Shown here in pieces: positions 131-34,823 of a DNA stretch of 64,000 bases. Both the position numbers and the translations under genes were made by a program. Each line of letters opens with the position of its first letter. Position 1 is the stretch's first letter. Below the pieces are notes generated by a model. That model was not told the DNA's origin, made no database searches, and worked only from the letters and a program-made list of their open reading frames with translations. This DNA is from Zygnema circumcarinatum SAG 698-1b (lineage: Eukaryota > Plantae > Zygnematophyceae), in contig CM074807.1 in the NCBI GenBank assembly GCA_037447605.1, positions 3,360,829 to 3,424,828 of the forward strand, read 5' to 3'.

Positions 131-17742
<17,612 letters not shown>

Positions 17743-20700: not shown

Positions 20701-21708
20701 ATTGGGGGTTGCTTCACTAGGAAGGAAGAATGTCACGTCTTCATTTGTGTTGGAATAATTCAGTTTGAGTGCAAGTAGAGCCCTTCAGGACGTTCTGTTG
20801 TTCAAAGAACATCGACTTTATGGTCTATCTCATTCTGTTCTTGTCTTTCTGCGTTTCCCCCCACCTCCCCCCAGCATACTAAGTTCGTACCTGGTAGGTA
20901 GACGGGAGGATAAGAAACAAAGAAGAGTAGGCATTTTTGGTCGAATTCAAATTGAGGAGCTTTTCCCAGTTGAAATCTTGGAGAAGAGCTGGAGTGCTGT
21001 CGCTGCCTGCTTAGGGGATGAAGGGCATGTTTCAGCAATACTTGGAGCACACAGGTTTCAGTCGTTCCAGTCTTGAGCTTCTTCTGCTCAGCTGCTCAGA
21101 GTTACTCCGTTGCGTGAACACGGGGTTACTGCATTCAGTTAGCTGTGGTAACTTTTGAGTCCCTTGTTCCTTGAAATTGGTGAGGACTTAGCTACTGCAG
21201 AATCTGCAGTCTTCTGAGCTGATTTCCTAAAGGATTGTAGCACGAATCAGTGAGAATAACTCGTGTTAGCTTCATTGGCTAAGTTTGCTACGGAGTGACA
21301 ACCCATCATTCCAGTCGTACAGTTGGAACCACCTGAAAATTAAGGAACTTTTGTTCTGACTACTTTTCCGACTCCTGAATCCTGTTGATGAACAACACTT
21401 CTTGTAGGCGAAGGTCGTATGTTGACGGTACTTCAGTTGTGACTGCAGAGCTTTGAATTACATTCTACAGCTCCTATTTTTTCTACAGGATGAGTAGGAG
21501 ATGTGAGTGCTGAACTGTAAAAGGGACCTGTTTAAGGTGTGATAATGGAGAGAAATAAGGATGAAGCTTCTGCATATTTGAGCTGCCCGAACAAGAGCTC
21601 TGACCGTTCATTTGGTCGGAGATTTGCTGTTCAGGTGGCTTGAAGAGCAGCCTCCAGACCCTTAGAAACTATCGAGGATTGAAAGACCCCGAAGTAATCT
21701 CCACTGCT

Positions 21709-24700
21709 ATGGCAGGGGCTGCAGTAGAGAGCCTGCAGTATGGAAGAGACATGCTACATACTATGACCGGAACTAAGCTTCAGGAAAACATGGAAGACAA
21801 CCTGCAGCGGAGTGATGCTGTACAGCAGATGGAGGAGGAGGAGCAGCATCAGCACGAGGAGGGAGAGGGAGTTCGGGAGGAAGAGAGAGAGGGGCAGCCA
21901 AGTGAGAACGGAGTTTCAAGCAGCTGTGTTCGATCCGAGGAGGAGGGAGAGGCGGATGTTCTGGATATGAAGGCAGAGGGGCAGGAGAGTGAGATGTCCC
22001 GCTCACATCTATGCAAAATCTGCAATAGAAATTTTCTGTCTGGCAGAGCTTTGGGAGGGCACATGAACACACATCGGGCGGAGCAAGGGGAGACTGAGGG
22101 AGGGTCCCATACAGAGACTGCAAAAAATGCATTCGGTCAGTGTGATGCTAAGCCCTCTATAGTGATTCGGCCTGCAAGTACTCGAGTTCGGACTGTACGT
22201 CACAATCAAACTCTTCTAGCTGGAGAAGGTGCAGAAAACGACAATGCAGGCTTCAGGGGAGTGAGAGTCAACGGATCTGGCTCTGGAATTGCGAAGAGTG
22301 AGGGAGAGGAAAAAATGGTAGATGAGCGGAAAGGTGGAAAGTCGCCTTCAGCTTCAAAGTCAGGGGAGGGGTCTCCCTCTTTCGACACTGATGCAGGGGT
22401 GCTGCAGGTGAAGGAAGAAGAGCAAGGGAAGGAGGGAGGGGCTCACGTGGGAGAGGAAAATGACTCAAAATGGAGCGGCGATAGCAGTAAGGTCCATGAA
22501 TGTAAGTCCTGTTTTCGGCATTTCCCTTCTGTGAGGGCTCTCAGAGGGCATATGCGCATACATAGCGCAGCAGGGGAGGGGCTGCCTAAGGTCTCAGATG
22601 CCGAAAGGAGGCCGGATGTTTCGGAGTACGAATGGTCAAGTGGGTCGGAGCGATTCTCAGGTGAGAGAGAGCGGAGCCCTCCCTCTCTAAAAGGTGGGCA
22701 TGAGTGGACCAAGAATGCTTCAGAGTGTGGAGGAGGACTGGGAGGAGAGGTTGGAGCGGATGCAGGAGCAGTCGGCTTTGTTAAGTTTCGGAGTGGGAAG
22801 CAGTTGTTTCAGTGCCGGGTCTGTGAGAAGGAGTTCATCTCCGGAAGGCTTCTAGGGAGGCATATGAAGAGGCAGCATCCGAGGGGAGTGGAGTCTGAAC
22901 GGGGTAGTGGGGAAGGTAGTGAGGGTATGGGAGGAGAAGGAGAGCGGACGGGCGAGCTTGGGGGGTCGTCGGAGTCACGGGAAGACAGAGGAGGGAGTGA
23001 TGCCGAAGGCGATAATGAGATGGGAGAGGCTCCGCGTGTGAGAGTGCATGTCTGTAGCGGATGCAGGCAAGTGTTCACCTCTAGGAGAGCTTTCTGCGAT
23101 CATAGAAAGCAGCATGATGGTGAAGGTCGCAGAAGACAGAAAAGGACCGGATCGGGAGTGGGAGGCTTAGCAGAAGCCCTTGCTGGTCAAGTGCATGTGA
23201 ATTCGGTGGAGGGGAATTTGGAGCACTCTTCAACGGCACGGAGACTGCCTGTTGGTCTCAATTCAACGGAGTGTATCTGCTCAGAATGTGGAAAAGAGTT
23301 CAACTCTTGCAAGGCCCTCTTCGGGCACATGCGATGCCATCCTGAGCGGGAATGGAGGGGGATTCAGAGGCCGGGGGAGACTCCTATTGTGAATAACAAT
23401 AATGCATCAGGAGGAGGAGGAGGAGGAGGAGGAGGTGGTGGAGGAGGAGGGAGGAGCGTGCTGAAAGGAAGGAAGAGTCAGGGGCATGAATCGGAGTCGC
23501 AAATAGGTCCACAAACGGAAGGAGAGATCATTCAACACAATCCCAATGGTGCCTTAGGATCTGACTCGGAAAGTGCTGAAAGCATTGAAGCTGCGTATGT
23601 GAACACACAGAAAAGCGTGGAGATAGGGAGTTGGATGACCGGAAAGAGGTCGAAAAGACCCAGAGTGGCTGTGAGAGCGATTCAGATACCCCCTCATCTC
23701 CTTCCTGAGAGTGGAGCAGTAGAGACTCCCTTGGCAGTTCGACAGGAAAGGCAGGAGAGGGATACTGCTGACTGCTTAGTCATGCTTGCAGCTGCAGCCG
23801 GAGTGGGGGGGCCTTCTCTTTTTCCGGAGGAGGGAGAGAGAGGGAAAGAGGGACAGGAAACGTTTGACGAGGAGAAGGAGGAGGAGATGCAGGAGCAGGA
23901 GCAGGAGAGTGGTACGGAGGAGATGGATGAGGGGGCGGAACAGGATGAGAAAGAAAGGGAGGAAATGGAGGGATTGGAGGAGACAAGCAAGATGGAGGTG
24001 GTTGAGGAGCTGAATGAAAATGAGCTGGAAAGTTCGGAGCACAACGAAGGGGAGGAAGAGATGGCAGATGTGGGGAAGCGGAGTTCAGAGGCGATGCATG
24101 AAGAACAGAGACATGGTGAAGTGATGCAGGTTGGGAGTGGAGCAGAGGAAGTGGAAGGCAACTTTGGAGAGGATGCTTCAAAAAGGAGAACTTTTATGGC
24201 AGAGGATGGAGGGAGTGGAGCAGAGCAGGGAGAGAGTATGATAGTGGAGATGCACTCGCCTCAAGTTGTGGGAGGGTTGGGAAGGAAGAGGCAGCGGAGT
24301 GATGAAACTGTGTTGCAGAGTGAAACGAAAAATATGACTGAAGACAAGCAACCCCTCCGTACATTAAAAGGGGACGAAAGCAGCGGACCCGGAACTTCAG
24401 TTGTTGCCAATAATGACTCAACCAGAAATGCTTCTCAAAGGAGGGGCTCAGAAGCTTCAGAAGATAAACTTTTAAGTGGGTGTGATAAGTACATTTGTTC
24501 CACCTGCCATAAAGTTTTTAAGTCACATCAAGCTCTTGGTGGGCATCGCGCGAGCCACCGAAAAGTTAAGGGAGTTCTCTTCCCTAAGAAACTTCTCACT
24601 GAAGGCTCTGTAACCTCTATGGTAAGTGTCCATTGCGTTCCAAGAGAGGGAGCCATTTCCTTGCAGGAGGGTGGGAGGGAGGGAGGTAGCGCTCCCTTCA

Positions 24701-26739
24701 GCACACTCAGCTCAGTCGCTATATCCACTATCCTCGGAGAGACAGAAAAGGCCAAAACTCAAGGGGATGAAGGGAGAGAGGACGTAGCGGGGCAAGTCAA
24801 GCAGGAGGAGGATGGGAGAGAGGTTGTGATAGCAGAGAAGATGGAGGAGGCGAGTAGAGAGTGGCGACTATCTGCTAACGCAGGTGTAAATCGAACAGAT
24901 CGAAGCGTTGTAGGAGGAGGTAGTGAGGGGGCTGCTTTGCCTGTGATCAGAGCAAAAGGAGAGACTCTTCTTGAGAAGGTAAAGGTGGAGACAGATGTGG
25001 GAGATGAAGCGTCTTCTCTGCATATAGCGGAGACCCGAATTCCTTTAGCACTTACGGGGAATGCGATGTCTGCTGGAAGCTCGGGTGGGAGGAAGAGGAA
25101 TGTGGGTCAGAAGGAGGGAAACTGGAAGGGAGAGAGGGCAGAGGAAGGCTCAGAGGGAGGCTCTAGTGGTGGAGGAGGGCTTGGTCTGAGAGTTCTCCTT
25201 AGAGGGAAAGGGCATGTTTGCACCATTTGCCACAAAGTGTTCTCCTCTGGTCAGGCTTTAGGTGGCCATAAGCGGTGCCATTGGACTGGGAATACTGCCA
25301 ATGATCCGGTTAATGCTAGTCCAGAACCCAGCAGCATTAGCATAGAGAATGGGCCTGCAGGGAATGAAGTGGGAGGAAACCACGCTCCGTTTGCTTCCAT
25401 TCTCGCTAAAGTAAATGGGGTGAAATCATCTCGCCAGGAAAGGACCTGCAAGGAGGAGTTTCTTGACCTAAATCTTCCCGCTCCGGAGGAGGAAGTTGGT
25501 GCGCCTATCCGCGAAGGAGGAGGAGCTCCTTCCCCACAGAATGGTATGTGGCAAAGTGGGCCCTCTAACATGGGAGGAGGAGGAGGAGGAGGAGGAGGAG
25601 GAGGAGGAGGAGGAGGAGGAGGGAGCGGACAGGGATCGAGAGTGGGGTCTCCTTCACAGATGAGTTCAGTGGAGACAGGGGTAGGAAATGCAAACAGTAG
25701 AGGCCCCTTCAGCAGCAGCAAATTGGGAGTCAATGGCTTCTCTCTGGTTGGAGTTCAAGTCCCCAATTCAAAGCCGCTGGGGATTGTCCCTCGCTCTCCA
25801 GTCTTGAACTATGGAGGAAATCAGGGCCACTCTGTATCCTCCACTACCACTCCGTCTACCTCCACTGCTACCACTCCCGCTACCACTACAACGTCTGCAA
25901 TGGATTCACCAAGTCAAGTCTCTCGCCAGCAGACCCTTCTTGAGCCTCTGACTTGTCAGAGGGGAAGCTCAGCCCGCCTTCCTCGAATGAGTCCCTTAGG
26001 AGGCCGACCCCTCCTTCCAAACCCCATGTATTCTTCCTTAGGAATGCAGGAGGAAGAAATTAAGCGTGTTGGTTTCCATTGGCTCTCATCCGGAGCTTTG
26101 GGGGGGGGGCGACTTCTCAACCCTCACAATGATGGACTGCAAAGCAGAGGCATGGACGCTCCCTCATCTCTCCCTACCCACCAAAACTCGATGGGAAAAC
26201 AGTTAGAATGGGGCTCCTCCAATGCAGGCTCTGCATCTGAAACTTCTCCCAAAAACTTGCTCGCAGCAGCAGGTTTTCAATCCCCAAGTGGAGCCCTTCC
26301 ACAGGGATGGCATCCAAACCTCACAGCTATGGGGCTTCAGCAAACTCTCTCCCCCCAAATAGCTGCCTATAATCTTCAGCAATCTTCTCTCTCTGTGGGA
26401 TCCCATCGAAACCTGCAGCAGGGGCAGCTTTTTAGCAGGCCTGCAGCTCCCGGGATGCAGCTCGCTAACCCTAATTTCAGACCAGTGGAATTCAGCTTTC
26501 GAGATGCTTATACTTTGGGAGATTCGGGAGGGAAGGGACCTTCTCCAAGGGGACTCGTACAAGGAAGATCGATGGAGCTTCGAGGAGGTTCACCTCCCTC
26601 AGGGAGCAGTCCTGTACCCTCATATGCTTGCCAGTTGTGTAAGAGAGATTTTCTCTCTTTGGGAGCTTTGGCAGCCCATGAACAGGGACAACATGGGCAG
26701 TTCCGAATGCATCCCGAATGCACCGTCACCTCCGTATAA
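21709..26739 (+). CDS. DAZ1: DAZ1/DAZ2 (ZAT2/ZAT3)-like C2H2 zinc-finger repressor with 8 fingers and an EAR motif, single exon
   Basis: Open frame 21640-26739; the track start is TTG and the first ATG is at 21709. Fingers include [29 protein letters not shown] (~23278), [21 protein letters not shown] (~24496) and [22 protein letters not shown] (~25219). It also has an L-box-like ADCLVMLA and the EAR motif DLNLP at 25465. The symbol indicates the clade; orthology is untested. Confidence 0.85.
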
Positions 26740-28840
26740 TATTCATGTTCTGACCTATGTGGTTATCAATTCTCGATATTTCCCTGATTCGGAAACTGGA
26801 GAGGGCTCTGTTTCTGTTGACCAGACGATGTCGGCAACCTGAGTGCTCTCGTGCGCTCTCTCTCTCTCTCTCTCTCTCTCGCTCTGAACCTGCAGGAGGG
26901 AGGAGGAAGGGCTGTGAGGGGAAGATGGTTGCAGGGACGATGTTCTTGTTAATAGCTCGGAGGATTGCTTTGATCTCTTAAGAGTTGTACAGAGTTTGGA
27001 ACTCGAAACGGGGAATGTCACATGGCCATTTTAATACGATATGTTGGGAAGACAAGTCCAGAATGTAGTAGTAAAGACGTCTAAAGATGTAGTGGGTATG
27101 CAGCCGCTTTTAAGAGTCTTTCGAAGGCTGCTGCTGTATATAATTGCTGCATGGGAGCACAAGCATGAAAGGCTGAAGCTCTGCAGTTGCTTGTGATGGG
27201 AGAGAAGAGTGGGAGGGCCTCAGGGAAAGAGATACTGTGGGTTATATATGAAGGCTATCCTGTATCTTTTCGGTAGGACAGCTATACAGGGGAAGGAGTA
27301 GGAGAGGGCCGAACCCTAATTGCAGCCTGCAATGAAACTTTCTACTTGGTCGCCCTCATGAAAAGTAGGTTCAAGTTGGATACAACTCCTTTAGCAGCTA
27401 GACAGTCGCAGATTTAAGCGGAGTTTTGGACTTTCTCTCGCTCTCTCTCTCTCTCTCTCCCCCTCCCTCTCTCTCCCTCTCGCTTTTGCCAAATAGCTCT
27501 AGGGGTATCGTACAAATCTATACATTGGCTAAGTATGTGTGATAAGGGGCAGTCCTATAAAGACGGGTTTCCTTGTGTACATAGTGAGGGTGGATGTGGG
27601 AGGAGCTTCCCTCTGTAGCGAGTGAGACCAGAAGAAGCACACATGTGTGATGGAGCCTCTCCCTTTGTACATGTCATCATTTTCTTACTTTCTGTGTGAA
27701 ATCAATTTTATGGCTTGGTATGTCGAATGATACTGCATGGCATAGCATGATGTGACACGACATCTTGGCATTTATGACATGGTGTAAGCCATAGTCTGTG
27801 GCATGGTAATACAAATCGAGATGTTTGAGTGTGTGTCTCCATTGTGGGTTATTCTTAATTCACCAACTTCCAATGACGAGTAAATGAAGGCATCCATGAA
27901 GTATCTAAATTATTTTCTCAGTTGAAATGTATGAAAACCAAACCAAACCTGCAGCCGAGACATCACCATCATCAGAAGATGCAGATGAACTTAATTATAT
28001 GCTTCCCTGTAGACCTGCCGTTCAGAGCACAGGGCAGCTCCGGCTGCGAAAATTACGCCACAAAGCAATCTACGCTGAAGTACAAAAGATTCTGAAGCAG
28101 AGAAACTGCGCCAATTCATGCCTTTAAGAGAGAAGTGGCATTGGTTAAGGCCCTTCTAAGGATCCCCTTCAAGGCATGTAGTGTAATGTAATGGGCCATG
28201 TGATGTTTCCGAGGCCATGGCCCATAGTATCTCGGCATGCCATACATTGAAAAATGCGCGAGTCATGCTCGGTTTATCTTGCCCTCAACCACAGAAGAAC
28301 TCGAGGGTTTGGAGGAGAAAAGGAATAAGAAATGGTTTTCCAAAGGCTGTTGAGCATGTTTTAGGGCTAAGAAAAAGGCAACATACTTCAATGGGCCTAC
28401 TTCAATGGGCCTGCTCTGTGTTGACGGAACAGAGGATGCAGAATGAAAACGGACGAGAGGGAGAAAAAAAGTGAGAGAGGAAGATGCACAAAATTTAAAA
28501 TTTTGCTTCAAACATCACGTCGCATGACGTATCAAGTTACTTTTTTTCAAGATAAAACATCGTTGACATTGTTACCGAAACGGTCGAAGTCTAAAAAGAA
28601 GCTACACACTTGTGGCATTTATTTAGCTTCTCCTCACACAACAAGAGAACAAAACCTATACCCTGTCAAAGAGGTCAAACTTCTCTTCAAAATTAAAGGA
28701 AAGAGAAGGCCAAACACCGCCGTAACCCCTTGAGCTTCCGGGTAGAAAAAACTGTGACACATTCCTGTTCCCTTCCATGTCGAGCTTGTTCAGTTCAGTG
28801 CAACTAACTACTGTACAACGGTAAGAAACAAAATTCTTGG

Positions 28841-28920
28841 ATGAGTTCCGGCATGGATCAAGAAGCAGCCCCTCCCTATGAGAGTTGTGGCTGCCTCCTT
28901 CATATAGCGGAACACTCACA
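28841..28920 (-). promoter_or_regulatory. Eukaryotic form-II SECIS element
   Basis: Minus strand reads GUUCCG-cuau-AUGAA-GGAGGCAGCC-ACAA-CUCUC-AUA-GGGAG-G-GGCUGCUUCU-UGAU-ccaugc-CGGAAC. This gives helix I GUUCCG/CGGAAC, a UGAA/UGAU non-Watson-Crick core, a fully paired 10-bp helix II, an unpaired AA and an apical mini-helix CUCUC/GGGAG. Confidence 0.88.
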
Positions 28921-29326
28921 TAGACGGTGCCTCTCTCTGCCGTGAGAGGGAGACAGAGAGAGAGAGAGGGAATACTCCCTCTCTTACCTACAAAACATGC
29001 CCCGAATTCCGCCGTAGAGCATGCTCGTGACAGCACCCTCTGACATCCTGCCAAGGCCCCAGAAGCACAATTTCACATTTTGAGTGCGCAAACATGCGAA
29101 GAAGTATGACCCCTAACGTATTATTCAGTATCAGATCTAATAAAATGTACATAATAATTTTTTTTTTTGCCAAAAACATACAACATTTTGTGCAAACACA
29201 ATGCAAACTATGGATTATTTCAATGTAATGAAATAAAATAAAATAAAGTAAACAATATACGACTAGAATTTCTATGAAGTATTCGACAATACAAACGCAA
29301 AGCATACCCTCTAAGTCGCCCTCTCC

Positions 29327-30349
29327 TTAGCTCGTTTCAACTCGGAGGTGCAGAACACTGTGAAGAGGAGGTGGGGGCGCCTCGGAGGGTTCTTTGGGCT
29401 TCCGTCCGAACATCTGTAGAACCAGAAAATGAACTGAACGGAGTGAGCATGGAAGCAGTAGAGCCCAAAAAAGGATGATGTCTATTCTTGTTGCTTTCCT
29501 CACGTCCTTACTTTGGCCTGTCCGTGAGACATTACATCATGGAACAAGTTATGGGTCATAGAACTGAAATTAGTTTGGTTTCCTCTGTAAGCCACAAAGA
29601 TCAAACCGCTGCAGCGATCACGAATAAACAAATTTGTTGAACGTTTTGGGAGGCGACTTCGCTCCTACAGTTGAATTAATGACAAGTTAAATCAAGCTTA
29701 AGTAACCGTTAGGGAAAGAACGTGGCTATTAACCTGAAGTCTCCCTCTCTTCTCCTCTCTCCTTCTCCTCTGTCCCTCCCAATTCCCTTCTCGCACTCCC
29801 TCTTTCCTCGTCCCCCCCTCCCCCTCCTCAACTCCCTCGCTCTCCTTCTCTCCTCCCATCCCCTCCCCTCCCCTCCCCCACTCCCACTCCCTCCCCCTTC
29901 CCCCTCACTCTACCTCCTCCTCCACCCCTTCTTTTCCCACCTCCCCCTCCCACCCTCCCTCCTATCCATCTCCCCCCCCCCCCTCTCGCCCTCTCCCCCT
30001 CTCCCCCTTTCCCCCTCTTCCCCACTCCCCCTCTCCCCCTCTCCCCCTCCCCCCCTCCCTCTTTCCCCCTCCCCCCCTCCCTCTTTCCCCCTCCCCACCT
30101 CCCCCTCTCCCCCTCTCCCCCTCTCCCCCTCCCTCCCTCCCTCCACCCCTCCCGCTCTCCCCCCCTCCATCTCTCCCCCTCCCTCCCCCTGCCCTCCAAG
30201 CCCACCTTCCTGAGCGTGTTCTTCAATCAGGCGGAGTGCTCCTCCGGCGACGCGCGCAGAAACTCCTTCGCGTGCTCACGCAGTTTCCCGACCGCTGACG
30301 TGGGCTCGGGCCGCCCGCACCCTCCCTCCCCGCCCGCCGCCCCCGCCAT
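29327..30349 (-). CDS. Candidate 76-aa selenoprotein (TGA41 = Sec) of an uncharacterised small plant-type family
   Basis: Exon 1 is 30206-30349 (ATG to AAG|GTGGGC) and exon 2 CDS is 29327-29413 (ctacag|ATG to TAA), joined by a phase-0 intron. Product: MAGAAGGEGGCGRPEPTSAVGKLREHAKEFLRASPEEHSA(U)LKNTLRK|MFGRKPKEPSEAPPPPLHSVLHLRVETS. The in-frame TGA is at 30229-30227 and a SECIS lies downstream on the same strand. Confidence 0.8.
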
Positions 30350-30615
30350 GGATCCTCCCTTATGCGATCTCCCTGCGAAGGGGCAAAAAGAAGAGGGGGG
30401 GGAAAGCTTCTAGAAGGACGGCCGGTTCTTTCTTTTAGCCAATGGGAAGTCGTCACGTGGACACTTTGCCCACGTGGCGAAGATGTTTAACTTTAAGTCA
30501 ATGTACGAATATGTTGAACCAAGGCGACATAACTGTCCGGACACAAAGGCTGGAGGCGCAGCACACTCCTGGAGGCACTACCCAAATTTCAAAACAGCCA
30601 TAGGAAAGTAGATTG

Positions 30616-32045
30616 ACATGCTACGTGGCACAGTTTCATTGGTTCAAACTGAGGCTAGGTACACAGCTGCCACAAAACAGCCGCTGGAATTTGTCGTATT
30701 AACCACCTGTCGCGCCGACACCTTCATGTCGGCGCATTCAAAAAGACAAGCACATGTACTGTAGAGTCAAAGAAACAGACAAAACAACATTGTACGTTAC
30801 ACCCAAAAAAAAAAGGAAAATGATACAGCGGCCCCACATTTTGGATATCGGCGCCCCCTTTTGGGAAAAATTGTACTTTTTTTTTTGGCTAATCACCCTC
30901 CCCTTGGATCTTTCGGGAGGAGAGATCTTGTAGACAATCGGACCCCGCGCCTCGCGCGCAGGATCCGACCGTGCACCAACGTACGACGCCGCGCATCGCG
31001 GCGTGGCCCGCGAGATGCGGCGAGCCTACGGAAAAGTTGTCCTCACCTGACCCGTTTGGGTCAGAGGTTGCCACGTGGCAGTCTGCCATTGGCCATCCCT
31101 GCTGCCGGTCCCCCATGCCGATACAGTGGACCCCCACCTTGTACAGTGCGTCCCCAAGAAATTTGCCCCGATTTTGCCGAAACCACCTTTTTGTACGGTA
31201 ACTCAATGTTAACGTATTAGGGGTGTTAACCTAACCTGAACTATTCTCCAATACAAAATTTGTTAATCGAAACGGATTTCAAACATGGGTCACGCTTTTA
31301 CGCTGTACGGTTAATACGAATAAAATCTCTGAGTCGTACGATATACGTACGGCACCAATAGGAGATCGTGTATCTAAATCACGGTACGATACGATACGAT
31401 ACGATATATACGAACAGACATGAACTCTAACATAATACCGCTCGCCTATTGGTAACACGGACCTTATATTTGCAAATTACAATATTTTCGCCCAGTATTT
31501 GCCGAAACCATGGCGAAAATATTATGGGGGTCCACTGTATCGGCATGGGGGACCGGCAGCAGGGCTGTCCAATGGCAGACTGCCACGTGGCAACCTTTGA
31601 CCCAAACGGGTCAGGTGAGGACAACTTTTCCGTAGGCTCGCCGCATCTCGCGGGCCACGCCGCGATGCGCGGCGCCGTACGTCGGTGCACGGTCGGATCC
31701 TGCGCGCGAGGCGCGGGGTCCGATTGTCTACAAGATCTCTCCTCCCGAAAGATCCAAGGGGAGGGTGATTAGCCAAAAAAAAAAGTACAATTTTTCCCAA
31801 AAGGGGGCGCCGATATCCAAAATGTGGGGCCGCTGTATCATTTTCCTTTTTTTTTTGGGTGTAACGTACAATGTTGTTTTGTCTGTTTCTTTGACTCTAC
31901 AGTACATGTGCTTGTCTTTTTGAATGCGCCGACATGAAGGTGTCGGCGCGACAGGTGGTTAATACGACAAATTCCAGCGGCTGTTTTGTGGCAGCTGTGT
32001 ACCTAGCCTCAGTTTGAACCAATGAAACTGTGCCACGTAGCATGT
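30616..32045. repeat. Long inverted repeat: arms 30616-31135 and 31526-32045 (~520 bp each, few mismatches) with a ~390-bp spacer; possible foldback or non-autonomous DNA element
   Basis: For example acatgctacgtggcacagtttcattggttcaaac at 30616 is the reverse complement of the sequence ending at 32045. The right arm ends at a 10-N gap, so the true termini and any TSD are not visible. Confidence 0.88.
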
Positions 32046-32055
32046 NNNNNNNNNN

Positions 32056-33075
32056 GGATATTAGCCAAAAAAAAAAAGTACAATTTTTTCCCAAAAGGGG
32101 GCGCCGATATCCAAGAGGTGGGGCCGCTGTATCATTTTCCAAAAAAAACAAACGAAAGTACGGACGTACTGGCTCTACGGTTTCCATGTTGGCGTAGCCG
32201 TGAACGGAACTGCGGACGGAGGGCTCCGCATGGAGCGGGCGGGCGCGGTCATGGCGGCATGAGGGCGGTCGTGCAGCGCGTGACGCGCGCCAGCGTCAAG
32301 GTTTTAGGGTTTAGGGTTTAGGGCTTGGGGGTTTAGGGTTGGGGGTTGTAGGGTTTAGGGCTTGGGATTTTAGGGTTGGGGGTTTAGGGTTTTAGGGTTG
32401 GGGGTTTTAGGGTTGGGAGTTTTAGGGTTGGGGGTTTTAGAGTTGGGGGTTTTAGGATTGGGAGTTTTAGGGTTGGGGATTTTAGGCTTGGGAGTTTAAG
32501 GGTTGGGGGTTTTTAGGGTTGGGGAGTTATAGGGTTTAGGTTTTGGGGTTTTAGGGTTCGGGGCTTTAGGGTTTAGGGCTTGGGGTTTTCGGGTTTAGGT
32601 TTAAGGTGTTTGGGATTTTTCACGAAACGCTGTCGAAGTTTGACTCTTTTTTCCTTTCCTTTTTATTAATATATGTTACTTCTTTTTTATGTATGCATTC
32701 CTTCATGTTTTTTGAATTCAGGTTGATGGAAAAGTGGTGTCGGAGATCGGGCCGGGGCTGTGCGTGCTGGTCGGCATCCTCGAGTCCGACTCCGACAGCG
32801 ATGCGGAATTCATGTGAGCACGGACATGAATGAATTTGGGTGCGGAATGCGGAATGCGGAAAACGGAATGCGGAATTTGGGTTGAAGTATTTGACGTGCG
32901 GAAGAAGAAGGGGCGGACTTGCGCGCATGAAAAGAGTCGAAAGAAGAAATGAATGAGGATGAGAGTAGGGCCCGAAAAGTGGAAATGGCAGATGTGGGGG
33001 CTGGTTGGTGGCTGCTGAATGGGGCGAAGGAGGGGATGGAGGGAGAGGGAGAGTCGCTCTCTGTCTCCCTTGTTC

Positions 33076-33115
<40 letters not shown>

Positions 33116-34431
33116 GCGCTCTCTTTCTCCCCGCCCTCCCCTCTTTCTACTCTCTGTATGCCTGTCTCACTCGCCCCCTCTCCGTCACTCTCCTCTCCCG
33201 CGATGTCTATATATTTCTGCCACTCCGTACCCTCTCCCCGCTCGAACTCCTCTCTCTCTTCCTTCGACCTTCCATGCCATCGATGCTTTCCTCCCCCAGA
33301 GAGAGCGAGAGAGAGAGGGAGAACGAACGAGAGAGAGAGAGCGCGAGAGAGCGAGAGGGAGCGAGAGAGAGTGAGAAAGAACGAGAGAGAGAGCGCGAGA
33401 CNNNNNNNNNNGGATATTAGCCAAAAAAAAAAAGTACAATTTTTTCCCAAAAGGGGGCGCCGATATCCAAGAGGTGGGGCCGCTGTATCATTTTCCAAAA
33501 AAAACAAACGAAAGTACGGACGTACTGGCTCTACGGTTTCCATGTTGGCGTAGCCGTGAACGGAACTGCGGACGGAGGGCTCCGCATGGAGCGGGCGGGC
33601 GCGGTCATGGCGGCATGAGGGCGGTCGTGCAGCGCGTGACGCGCGCCAGCGTCAAGGTTTTAGGGTTTAGGGTTTAGGGCTTGGGGGTTTAGGGTTGGGG
33701 GTTGTAGGGTTTAGGGCTTGGGATTTTAGGGTTGGGGGTTTAGGGTTTTAGGGTTGGGGGTTTTAGGGTTGGGAGTTTTAGGGTTGGGGGTTTTAGAGTT
33801 GGGGGTTTTAGGATTGGGAGTTTTAGGGTTGGGGATTTTAGGCTTGGGAGTTTAAGGGTTGGGGGTTTTTAGGGTTGGGGAGTTATAGGGTTTAGGTTTT
33901 GGGGTTTTAGGGTTCGGGGCTTTAGGGTTTAGGGCTTGGGGTTTTCGGGTTTAGGTTTAAGGTGTTTGGGATTTTTCACGAAACGCTGTCGAAGTTTGAC
34001 TCTTTTTTCCTTTCCTTTTTATTAATATATGTTACTTCTTTTTTATGTATGCATTCCTTCATGTTTTTTGAATTCAGGTTGATGGAAAAGTGGTGTCGGA
34101 GATCGGGCCGGGGCTGTGCGTGCTGGTCGGCATCCTCGAGTCCGACTCCGACAGCGATGCGGAATTCATGTGAGCACGGACATGAATGAATTTGGGTGCG
34201 GAATGCGGAATGCGGAAAACGGAATGCGGAATTTGGGTTGAAGTATTTGACGTGCGGAAGAAGAAGGGGCGGACTTGCGCGCATGAAAAGAGTCGAAAGA
34301 AGAAATGAATGAGGATGAGAGTAGGGCCCGAAAAGTGGAAATGGCAGATGTGGGGGCTGGTTGGTGGCTGCTGAATGGGGCGAAGGAGGGGATGGAGGGA
34401 GAGGGAGAGTCGCTCTCTGTCTCCCTTGTTC

Positions 34432-34471
<40 letters not shown>

Positions 34472-34757
34472 GCGCTCTCTTTCTCCCCGCCCTCCCCTCT
34501 TTCTACTCTCTGTATGCCTGTCTCACTCGCCCCCTCTCCGTCACTCTCCTCTCCCGCGATGTCTATATATTTCTGCCACTCCGTACCCTCTCCCCGCTCG
34601 AACTCCTCTCTCTCTTCCTTCGACCTTCCATGCCATCGATGCTTTCCTCCCCCAGAGAGAGCGAGAGAGAGAGGGAGAACGAACGAGAGAGAGAGAGCGC
34701 GAGAGAGCGAGAGGGAGCGAGAGAGAGTGAGAAAGAACGAGAGAGAGAGCGCGAGAC
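32056..34757 (+). repeat. Direct duplication 32056-33401 / 33412-34757 (offset 1356), probably an uncollapsed contig overlap
   Basis: The two copies appear identical (same ORFs in the track), and copy 1 is bounded on both sides by 10-N gaps. Confidence 0.9.
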
Positions 34758-34792
34758 AGAGAGAGAGAGAGAGCGCGAGTGATGGAGAGGGA

Positions 34793-34823
<31 letters not shown>

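Follow-up and report, generated by a model that had tools for sequence, protein, structure and literature searches.

A small gene with an in-frame UGA in Zygnema circumcarinatum as a candidate member of an apparently undescribed selenoprotein family of green algae

The decoding of UGA as selenocysteine (Sec) with the aid of a SECIS element is the standard mechanism of selenoprotein synthesis in eukaryotes, and most of the known selenoprotein families are thioredoxin-fold oxidoreductases that have Cys-form relatives. New eukaryotic selenoprotein families are, to our knowledge, rare. In a stretch of 64,000 nucleotides from the alga Zygnema circumcarinatum SAG 698-1b (hereafter the window, meaning the whole stretch of DNA that was analysed), a small frame on the minus strand is interrupted by a single TGA, beyond which it stays open and can be spliced in phase to a second exon. 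The locus thus raises the question of whether this TGA ends a peptide of about 40 residues or specifies Sec in a longer protein, and, in the latter case, whether that protein belongs to any family described so far. In this paper, we conclude from the conservation of the sequence that this small nuclear gene very probably encodes a 76-residue selenoprotein in which UGA-41 is read as Sec with the help of a downstream type-II SECIS. Under this reading, translation would start from the first AUG of the minus-strand gene, and the SECIS in the 3' UTR would recruit SBP2, eEFSec and Sec-tRNA for the decoding of UGA-41.

The gene model and the SECIS element in the window

The ATG at 30349 is the first one downstream of a promoter-like stretch on the minus strand, and reading by eye found no ATG between ~30420 and 30349 on that strand. 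According to the scripted translation, 40 sense codons run from this ATG to TGA 30229-30227, which is codon 41, and are followed by 7 open codons (LKNTLRK) up to the end of exon 1 at 30206, where the GT at 30205-30204 begins the donor sequence GTGGGC. Exon 1 has a length of 144 nt, which gives a splice phase of 0. The acceptor of intron 1 reads ...TTCTACAG, exon 2 opens with ATGTTCGG... at 29413, and its frame (MFGRK...VETS) is closed by TAA 29329-29327, giving a spliced product of 76 aa. As read from these letters, the locus is a two-exon gene for a 76-residue protein, and the exon, TGA and splice coordinates, as well as the product, that the preliminary description had given were reproduced both by reading the sequence and by scripted translation. 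Other donors for exon 1 and other frames for exon 2 (including one with a second TGA, in frame 3) were considered and ruled out, as the homologues fix both the frame and the junction. The features of the gene, in the order in which they would be transcribed, are as follows.

30400..30650, minus strand: putative promoter-like region, read by eye
near 30642 and 30444, minus strand: CCAAT/ATTGG boxes, read by eye
near 30476-30454, minus strand: two CACGTG boxes, read by eye
30206..30349, minus strand: coding part of exon 1, 48 codons (Met-1 to Ala-40, Sec-41 and LKNTLRK), from translation and N-terminal homology
30227..30229, minus strand: in-frame TGA, predicted selenocysteine codon 41, with TGA in 12 of 12 fetched loci
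29414..30205, minus strand: intron 1, 792 nt, GT...AG, phase 0, from the sequence and from 8 other genomic loci with a phase-0 intron at this place
29327..29413, minus strand: coding part of exon 2, MFGRK...LHSVLHLRVETS, and TAA stop, with conserved [MF]F[GS] start and HSV[LFM]R[LC][RQK]V motif
28913..29326, minus strand: 3' UTR from the stop to the SECIS, with two candidate introns from splice-site reading
28846..28912, minus strand: predicted type-II SECIS, with AUGA at 28903-28900, unpaired AA at 28886-28885 and UGAU at 28860-28857
28618..28623, minus strand: AATAAA, possible polyadenylation signal, read by eye

The same-strand SECIS reported in the preliminary description was recovered with the Rfam SECIS_1 model, which matches 28846-28912 on the minus strand with 32.6 bits, just below its gathering score of 35 (E 8.8e-4, for a 4-kb stretch searched against all 4227 Rfam families). 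The unpaired AA precedes the mini-stem, and the fold has an energy of about -33 kcal/mol with a z-score of -2.9 to -3.6. The distance of about 200 nt from the UGA to this element that had been proposed stands in part: the start of the SECIS lies 521 nt past the UGA in the once-spliced mRNA, and 211 nt past it only if two more putative introns are removed from the 3' UTR, i.e. GT 29307...AG 29048 and GT 28987...AG 28937, both from splice-site reading. The stretch of the first of these candidates (29326-29048) has a GC content of 33%, against 48-71% in the exons. Furthermore, the SECIS begins 423 nt past the stop codon in the window, compared with ~45-165 nt in the relatives described below, and this shorter distance in the relatives makes two further 3'-UTR introns plausible in the window gene.

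Some other properties of the region may be recorded here. Intron 1 consists mostly of a degenerate GA-rich GGGGAGA/GGGAGG low-complexity array (29745-30200, minus strand), which, when read in frame, would add ~125 residues of G/E/R repeats and was treated as non-coding; the opposite strand of the array holds a 163-aa Pro/Ser-rich ORF. Exact protein look-ups with the 40-aa N-terminus, a 105-aa ORF of the 3' UTR and a 96-aa antisense ORF gave no match, and there is no tRNA in the window. Tail-to-tail with the gene lies a 1699-codon open frame on the plus strand (21640-26739); the encoded protein has numerous zinc-finger motifs of the C2H2 type (C..C...H...H) scattered along it, as well as long runs of Gly and stretches rich in Glu. 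A pure (CT)n array of 3.7 kb occupies 6674-10412 (1869 copies, 99% matches), with GC and AT skews of -1 over 8-10 kb, and a perfect tandem duplication of 1356 bp, rich in CT low-complexity sequence and in internal periodic repeats of 8-15 nt, occupies 32046-34800 (32046-32345 equals 33402-33701, and 33053 corresponds to 34409, at 100% identity).

Homologues in public sequence sets and the novelty of the family

An exhaustive phmmer search of 1.84 billion representative proteins with the 40-aa N-terminal piece matched P0001, a protein of 46 aa, with E 1.3e-8, and P0003, one of 92 aa, with E 6e-5; the two sequences stop exactly at the column of the window's TGA. Profile searches of 5.8 billion proteins, reaching E-values of 1e-17 and 1e-38, returned 15 relatives, and then 62 with a wider profile at E <= 10. 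Since separate rows for the post-UGA fragments misaligned, these profiles were built mainly from N-terminal rows together with one full-length member; the profile with 15 matches includes the KMFG block. In ~60 relatives, the sequence either ends at H-x-x, the column just before Sec, or has W at the Sec column. The latter holds for 4 relatives, where the W is the gene caller's rendering of TGA as Trp and the protein continues WLKNTF.K.... The pattern of homologues ending at one and the same column is far beyond chance. Neither Cys nor any ordinary residue other than the caller's W occurs at the Sec column in these ~60 relatives. One relative, P0032, runs on as ...EEHK-VRIL... rather than ending. 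In that lineage an intron may therefore lie one codon ahead of Sec, unlike in the rest of the family.

An additional locus of the same layout (L004) was found in metagenome contigs with a degenerate nucleotide pattern that spans the UGA. A word-indexed search had no matches for the 76-aa product with X in the Sec position, and an N-terminal alignment search found nothing in metagenome contigs or viral contigs. Pfam gave only noise, both on the 76-aa product and on 16 members, as did a profile search of the PDB, which detected no relative. These results, together with the lack of a CxxU motif, agree with the earlier statement that the product matches no known selenoprotein family.

The members with a species name come from Tetraselmis chui, T. 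astigmatica and Tetraselmis sp. GSL018 (MMETSP), and the remaining ones from JGI, ENA and Logan assemblies, with GC contents from ~42% to ~66% and with one of them on a contig of 3.45 Mb. Database copies of the family are truncated, and are unnamed or called "hypothetical protein". Two members, P0062 and P0064, are very rich in GC and in Ala/Gly, one of them being present in NCBI, JGI, Logan and ENA. Their likely source is a Chlamydomonas-like or other high-GC chlorophyte, and should this be a model alga, the curated set of its selenoproteins would lack one gene.

One may ask whether the family has been described before. An algal selenoproteome survey of 137 species, including MMETSP transcriptomes, lists 42 families and also gives three novel ones, and the family described here is in neither group. 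By sequence comparison it is also distinct from MSP and from the Ostreococcus hypothetical proteins 1-3, and neither its literal motif strings, looked for in 8.4 million papers, nor any description of it was found in the open full-text literature. The genes of the 137-species survey are stored in a web database, however, and it is conceivable, though we think it the less probable case by a good measure, that the family is already recorded there or elsewhere, e.g. in SPDB, SelenoDB or a subscription paper, so that the window gene would be a missed annotation rather than a new family. Besides the absence from the survey and from the open literature, the lack of a Pfam family and the state of the database copies speak against an earlier record. 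It thus appears that we are dealing with an undescribed selenoprotein family of green algae.

Conservation at and beyond the UGA

The DNA of the Sec column could be compared in 12 fetched loci, i.e. the window and L001, L002, L004, L016, L022, L023, L025, L026, L027, L028 and L030. Its codon is TGA in all 12 of them, and never TAA or TAG. The other sequences fetched from the groups L016-L021, L023/L024 and L028-L030 likewise show TGA. Beyond the TGA, the sequence L-K-[NS]-[TS]-[FL]-x-K is invariant or conservatively substituted in the fetched loci. In L001, for instance, ...SPEEHKK is followed by TGA and, in frame and with no intron, by LKNTLNK-MFGRR...LRSVLTLRVE...; this contig is cDNA-like, with a SECIS-like hairpin on the same sequence as the UGA and exon 2. 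In L002, ...MEDHKK, TGA and LKNTLGK are separated from MFF...NVLNLRVE... by a GT-AG intron of 60 nt in phase 0. Taken over the 12 loci, the intron position is shared by 9 (all in phase 0), two loci are intron-less and one is the cDNA-like sequence. In most of the loci, the exon past the intron opens with [MFL]F and has an HSV[LFM]R[LC]xV motif further on; L001, L002, L022, L023, L026, L027 and L028 keep both the [MF]F[GS] start and the motif in the form HSV[LFM]R[LC][RQK]V. Two separate small ORFs, the second of which would start from its own Met in exon 2, were rejected, because in most relatives the first residue of exon 2 is Phe or Leu.

The spelling of the post-UGA codons varies among the loci (Leu as TTG, CTG or TTA, Lys as AAG or AAA, Asn as AAC or AAT, Thr as ACG or ACC). 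Over the 7 post-UGA codons of 8 loci, pairwise differences number 41, 16 and 75 at codon positions 1, 2 and 3, respectively, and the same set contains 64 synonymous versus 37 non-synonymous codon differences. The close pair L028 and L030 shows 4 synonymous and 0 non-synonymous changes over 37 post-UGA codons, and their introns are identical at just 72 of 89 positions, with indels.

Elements of the SECIS type accompany the gene in several relatives. Downstream on the sense strand, SECIS_1 has matches in five lineages, among them the window, L002 (26.3 bits, ~125 nt past its stop), L023 (27.5 bits) and L027 (25.4 bits), the window copy having the highest score in the family, and a strict SECIS pattern scan recovers the window, L002 and L023. 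By eye and by folding, AUGA...GA hairpins are seen in L001, L022 and L025, which SECIS_1 does not match at E <= 1; that of L001, of the form AUGA...UGAU, begins 60 nt past the stop. At the same threshold, SECIS_1 has no match in L004, L016, L026 or L028 either. The elements of the family have the core and the architecture in common, and their helix sequences differ so that they are not alignable beyond the core. Divergence of the helix sequences is expected of SECIS elements. In two intron-less marine members, L025 (2862-3000) and L016 (1375-1460), the sole well-flanked AUGA/UGAA pair encloses ~110 nt, roughly double the size of a normal SECIS, which may reflect an expanded apical region.

These observations support the main claim of the preliminary description, that of a selenoprotein gene which ORF calling had overlooked, in that the UGA, the post-UGA frame, the intron position and the SECIS are conserved among the relatives, and we regard the selenoprotein reading as strongly supported by this conservation in many lineages. 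Against it count the SECIS score under the gathering threshold, the lack of a SECIS_1 match in several relatives, and the S-A that the window has before Sec in place of the usual K-K. This S-A also bears on the possibility that the family is real and the window copy is a non-working one, being unexpressed, decaying or transcribed into an mRNA unlike our model. The long span from stop to SECIS and the long, repeat-filled intron 1 would fit such a copy as well. We nevertheless consider it improbable, as the frame of the window copy is intact, all the invariant residues and canonical splice sites are present, its SECIS scores best in the family, and the promoter-like boxes and the context of the first AUG are preserved; moreover, small-assembly sequencing runs hold 40-68% of the words of the locus, which is compatible with transcripts and is no proof of them.

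If the UGA simply ended translation, the gene would yield a peptide of ~40 aa and the hairpin would be a coincidence. Gene callers do end the protein there, and an ORF of 40 aa is possible in principle. However, an ordinary stop could have become TAA or TAG in some of the 12 loci, none of which has either, and it would explain neither the SECIS_1 matches in the window and several relatives nor a post-UGA frame that is conserved across a phase-0 intron into exon 2; the synonymous bias of the changes past the UGA excludes it in our analysis, and its probability is therefore put very low. Equally improbable is readthrough of the UGA in which a near-cognate tRNA for Trp, Cys or Arg takes the place of Sec-tRNA. 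This is a case which the downstream conservation alone cannot separate from Sec decoding, but against which stand the 3'-UTR SECIS of the window and several relatives and the failure of any sense codon to become fixed in ~60 relatives, although such fixation should have occurred if Trp or Cys sufficed.

The predicted protein, its origin and its comparison with known selenoproteins

Members of the family are 70-100 aa long and share the signature H-[AVW]-K-E-F-x-x-A-[ST]-P-E-E-H-x-x-U-L-K-[NS]-[TS]-[FL]-x-K, followed by the phase-0 intron and then by [MF]F[GS], which a variable linker rich in Pro and Lys separates from HSV[LFM]R[LC]xV. In the numbering of the window protein, His-26, Phe-30, Ala-33, Glu-36, His-38, Sec-41, Leu-42, Lys-43 and Lys-48 are invariant or nearly so, and His-26, His-38 and Sec-41 are invariant across the family. 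Sequence varies over the first 15-30 residues, which are acidic or rich in Gly. In most members this part includes one Cys, often in a start of the form MSC... or MGC..., and the N-terminus is free of Cys in several subgroups (MPDD..., MGEE..., MGRED...), so that a Cys-Sec redox pair is not general in the family.

An AlphaFold2 model of the full-length member P0010, computed with the family alignment, has a disordered N-terminus, a helix at 28-41, a break at A-S/T-P and a helix at 44-88, with H-x-x-U in the second turn of the long helix; its confidence is low (pLDDT 59.8 overall and 70-77 in the core, pTM 0.28). The fold is thus predicted to be a helix-turn-helix. In such a structure, Sec-41 would lie one turn past His-38 on the same helical face, and His-26 on the preceding helix. 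Our tentative picture of the protein, rather doubtful at present, begins with a disordered arm, after which come one helix, the S/T-P-E-E cap and a second, long helix. His-26, His-38 and Sec-41 might then make up a single-Sec centre for redox chemistry or metal binding, assisted by the N-terminal Cys. Where present, the N-terminal Cys could be a resolving thiol or, in view of the MGC.../MSC... starts, a lipidation site.

As for the origin of the family, it had been suggested that land plants carry a descendant with Cys at the Sec column, and a homology search had been proposed accordingly. The search showed the TGA and the post-UGA sequence to be kept in other loci, and it brought up no Cys form. 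No embryophyte Cys form is among the 62 (E <= 10) or the 15 profile matches in 5.8 billion proteins, a search that short divergent forms below ~31 bits would escape, and a land-plant Cys family is hence unsupported. A feature search of the ESM Atlas with full-length P0010 ranked three Streptophyta clusters at the top (91-102 aa, scores 0.88-0.90, 204-214 shared features); these clusters serve as a lead. In the same resource the conserved core alone had no match, and P0001 gave nothing useful.

If the placements of the Tetraselmis members and of the window alga hold, the family would predate the split of chlorophytes and streptophytes. On balance, we lean somewhat towards the view that this is an undescribed and apparently Sec-only family inherited from an ancestor at least as old as that of chlorophytes (Tetraselmis) and streptophytes, which would occur plentifully in environmental sequence from eukaryotes and escape annotation, since every gene caller stops at the UGA; which would hold, in its His...His-x-x-Sec helix-turn-helix, a new selenium active site or metal site; and which would have been lost without replacement when land plants dropped Sec. 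A protein of ~8 kDa that is strictly Sec in ~60 database clusters, with invariant His residues near the Sec, points to a chemistry in which sulfur cannot replace selenium, and selenium biology would gain in this family a new target that is small and tractable. If the reading is true, it adds one gene to the selenoproteome of the algae nearest to land plants and sharpens the picture of what embryophytes lost together with Sec, and the public protein sets hold dozens of truncated "hypothetical protein" copies of one selenoprotein.

Among the known selenoproteins, SelK and SelS resemble the window protein in several respects: they have fewer than 200 aa and no thioredoxin fold, carry a single Sec without CxxU, are largely disordered, have few or no Cys-form homologues and depend on a type-II SECIS for decoding. 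In contrast to the window protein, which has no hydrophobic segment and places its Sec at position 41 of 76, in a mid-protein helix past the S/T-P-E-E cap, SelK and SelS possess a transmembrane helix, and their Sec lies within a Gly-rich tail, 2-3 residues before the C-terminal end. Neither the window product nor the members match the Pfam families SelK_SelG, Selenoprotein_S or Rdx. The Rdx family (SelW, SelH, SelT and SelV) is likewise small, occurs in both algae and animals and has its Sec in the N-terminal half; its members have a thioredoxin-like fold with CxxU, whereas the family described here has H-x-x-U and is predicted to be all-helical. MSP, the Ostreococcus hypothetical proteins 1-3 (PUB, PITH and 'Hypo') and SymSEP are unrelated to it in sequence and differ from it in their Sec contexts or domains, the MSP and Ostreococcus proteins having a C-terminal CUG or CUGR, a GLUNIAQAG motif or two Sec in a membrane protein, and SymSEP having a Trx-like domain and CxxC homologues. 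They are similar to it in the way they came to light, i.e. solely through the combination of a UGA, a SECIS and conserved flanks, and, like the window family, they are confined to unicellular algae and protists and have no function assigned.
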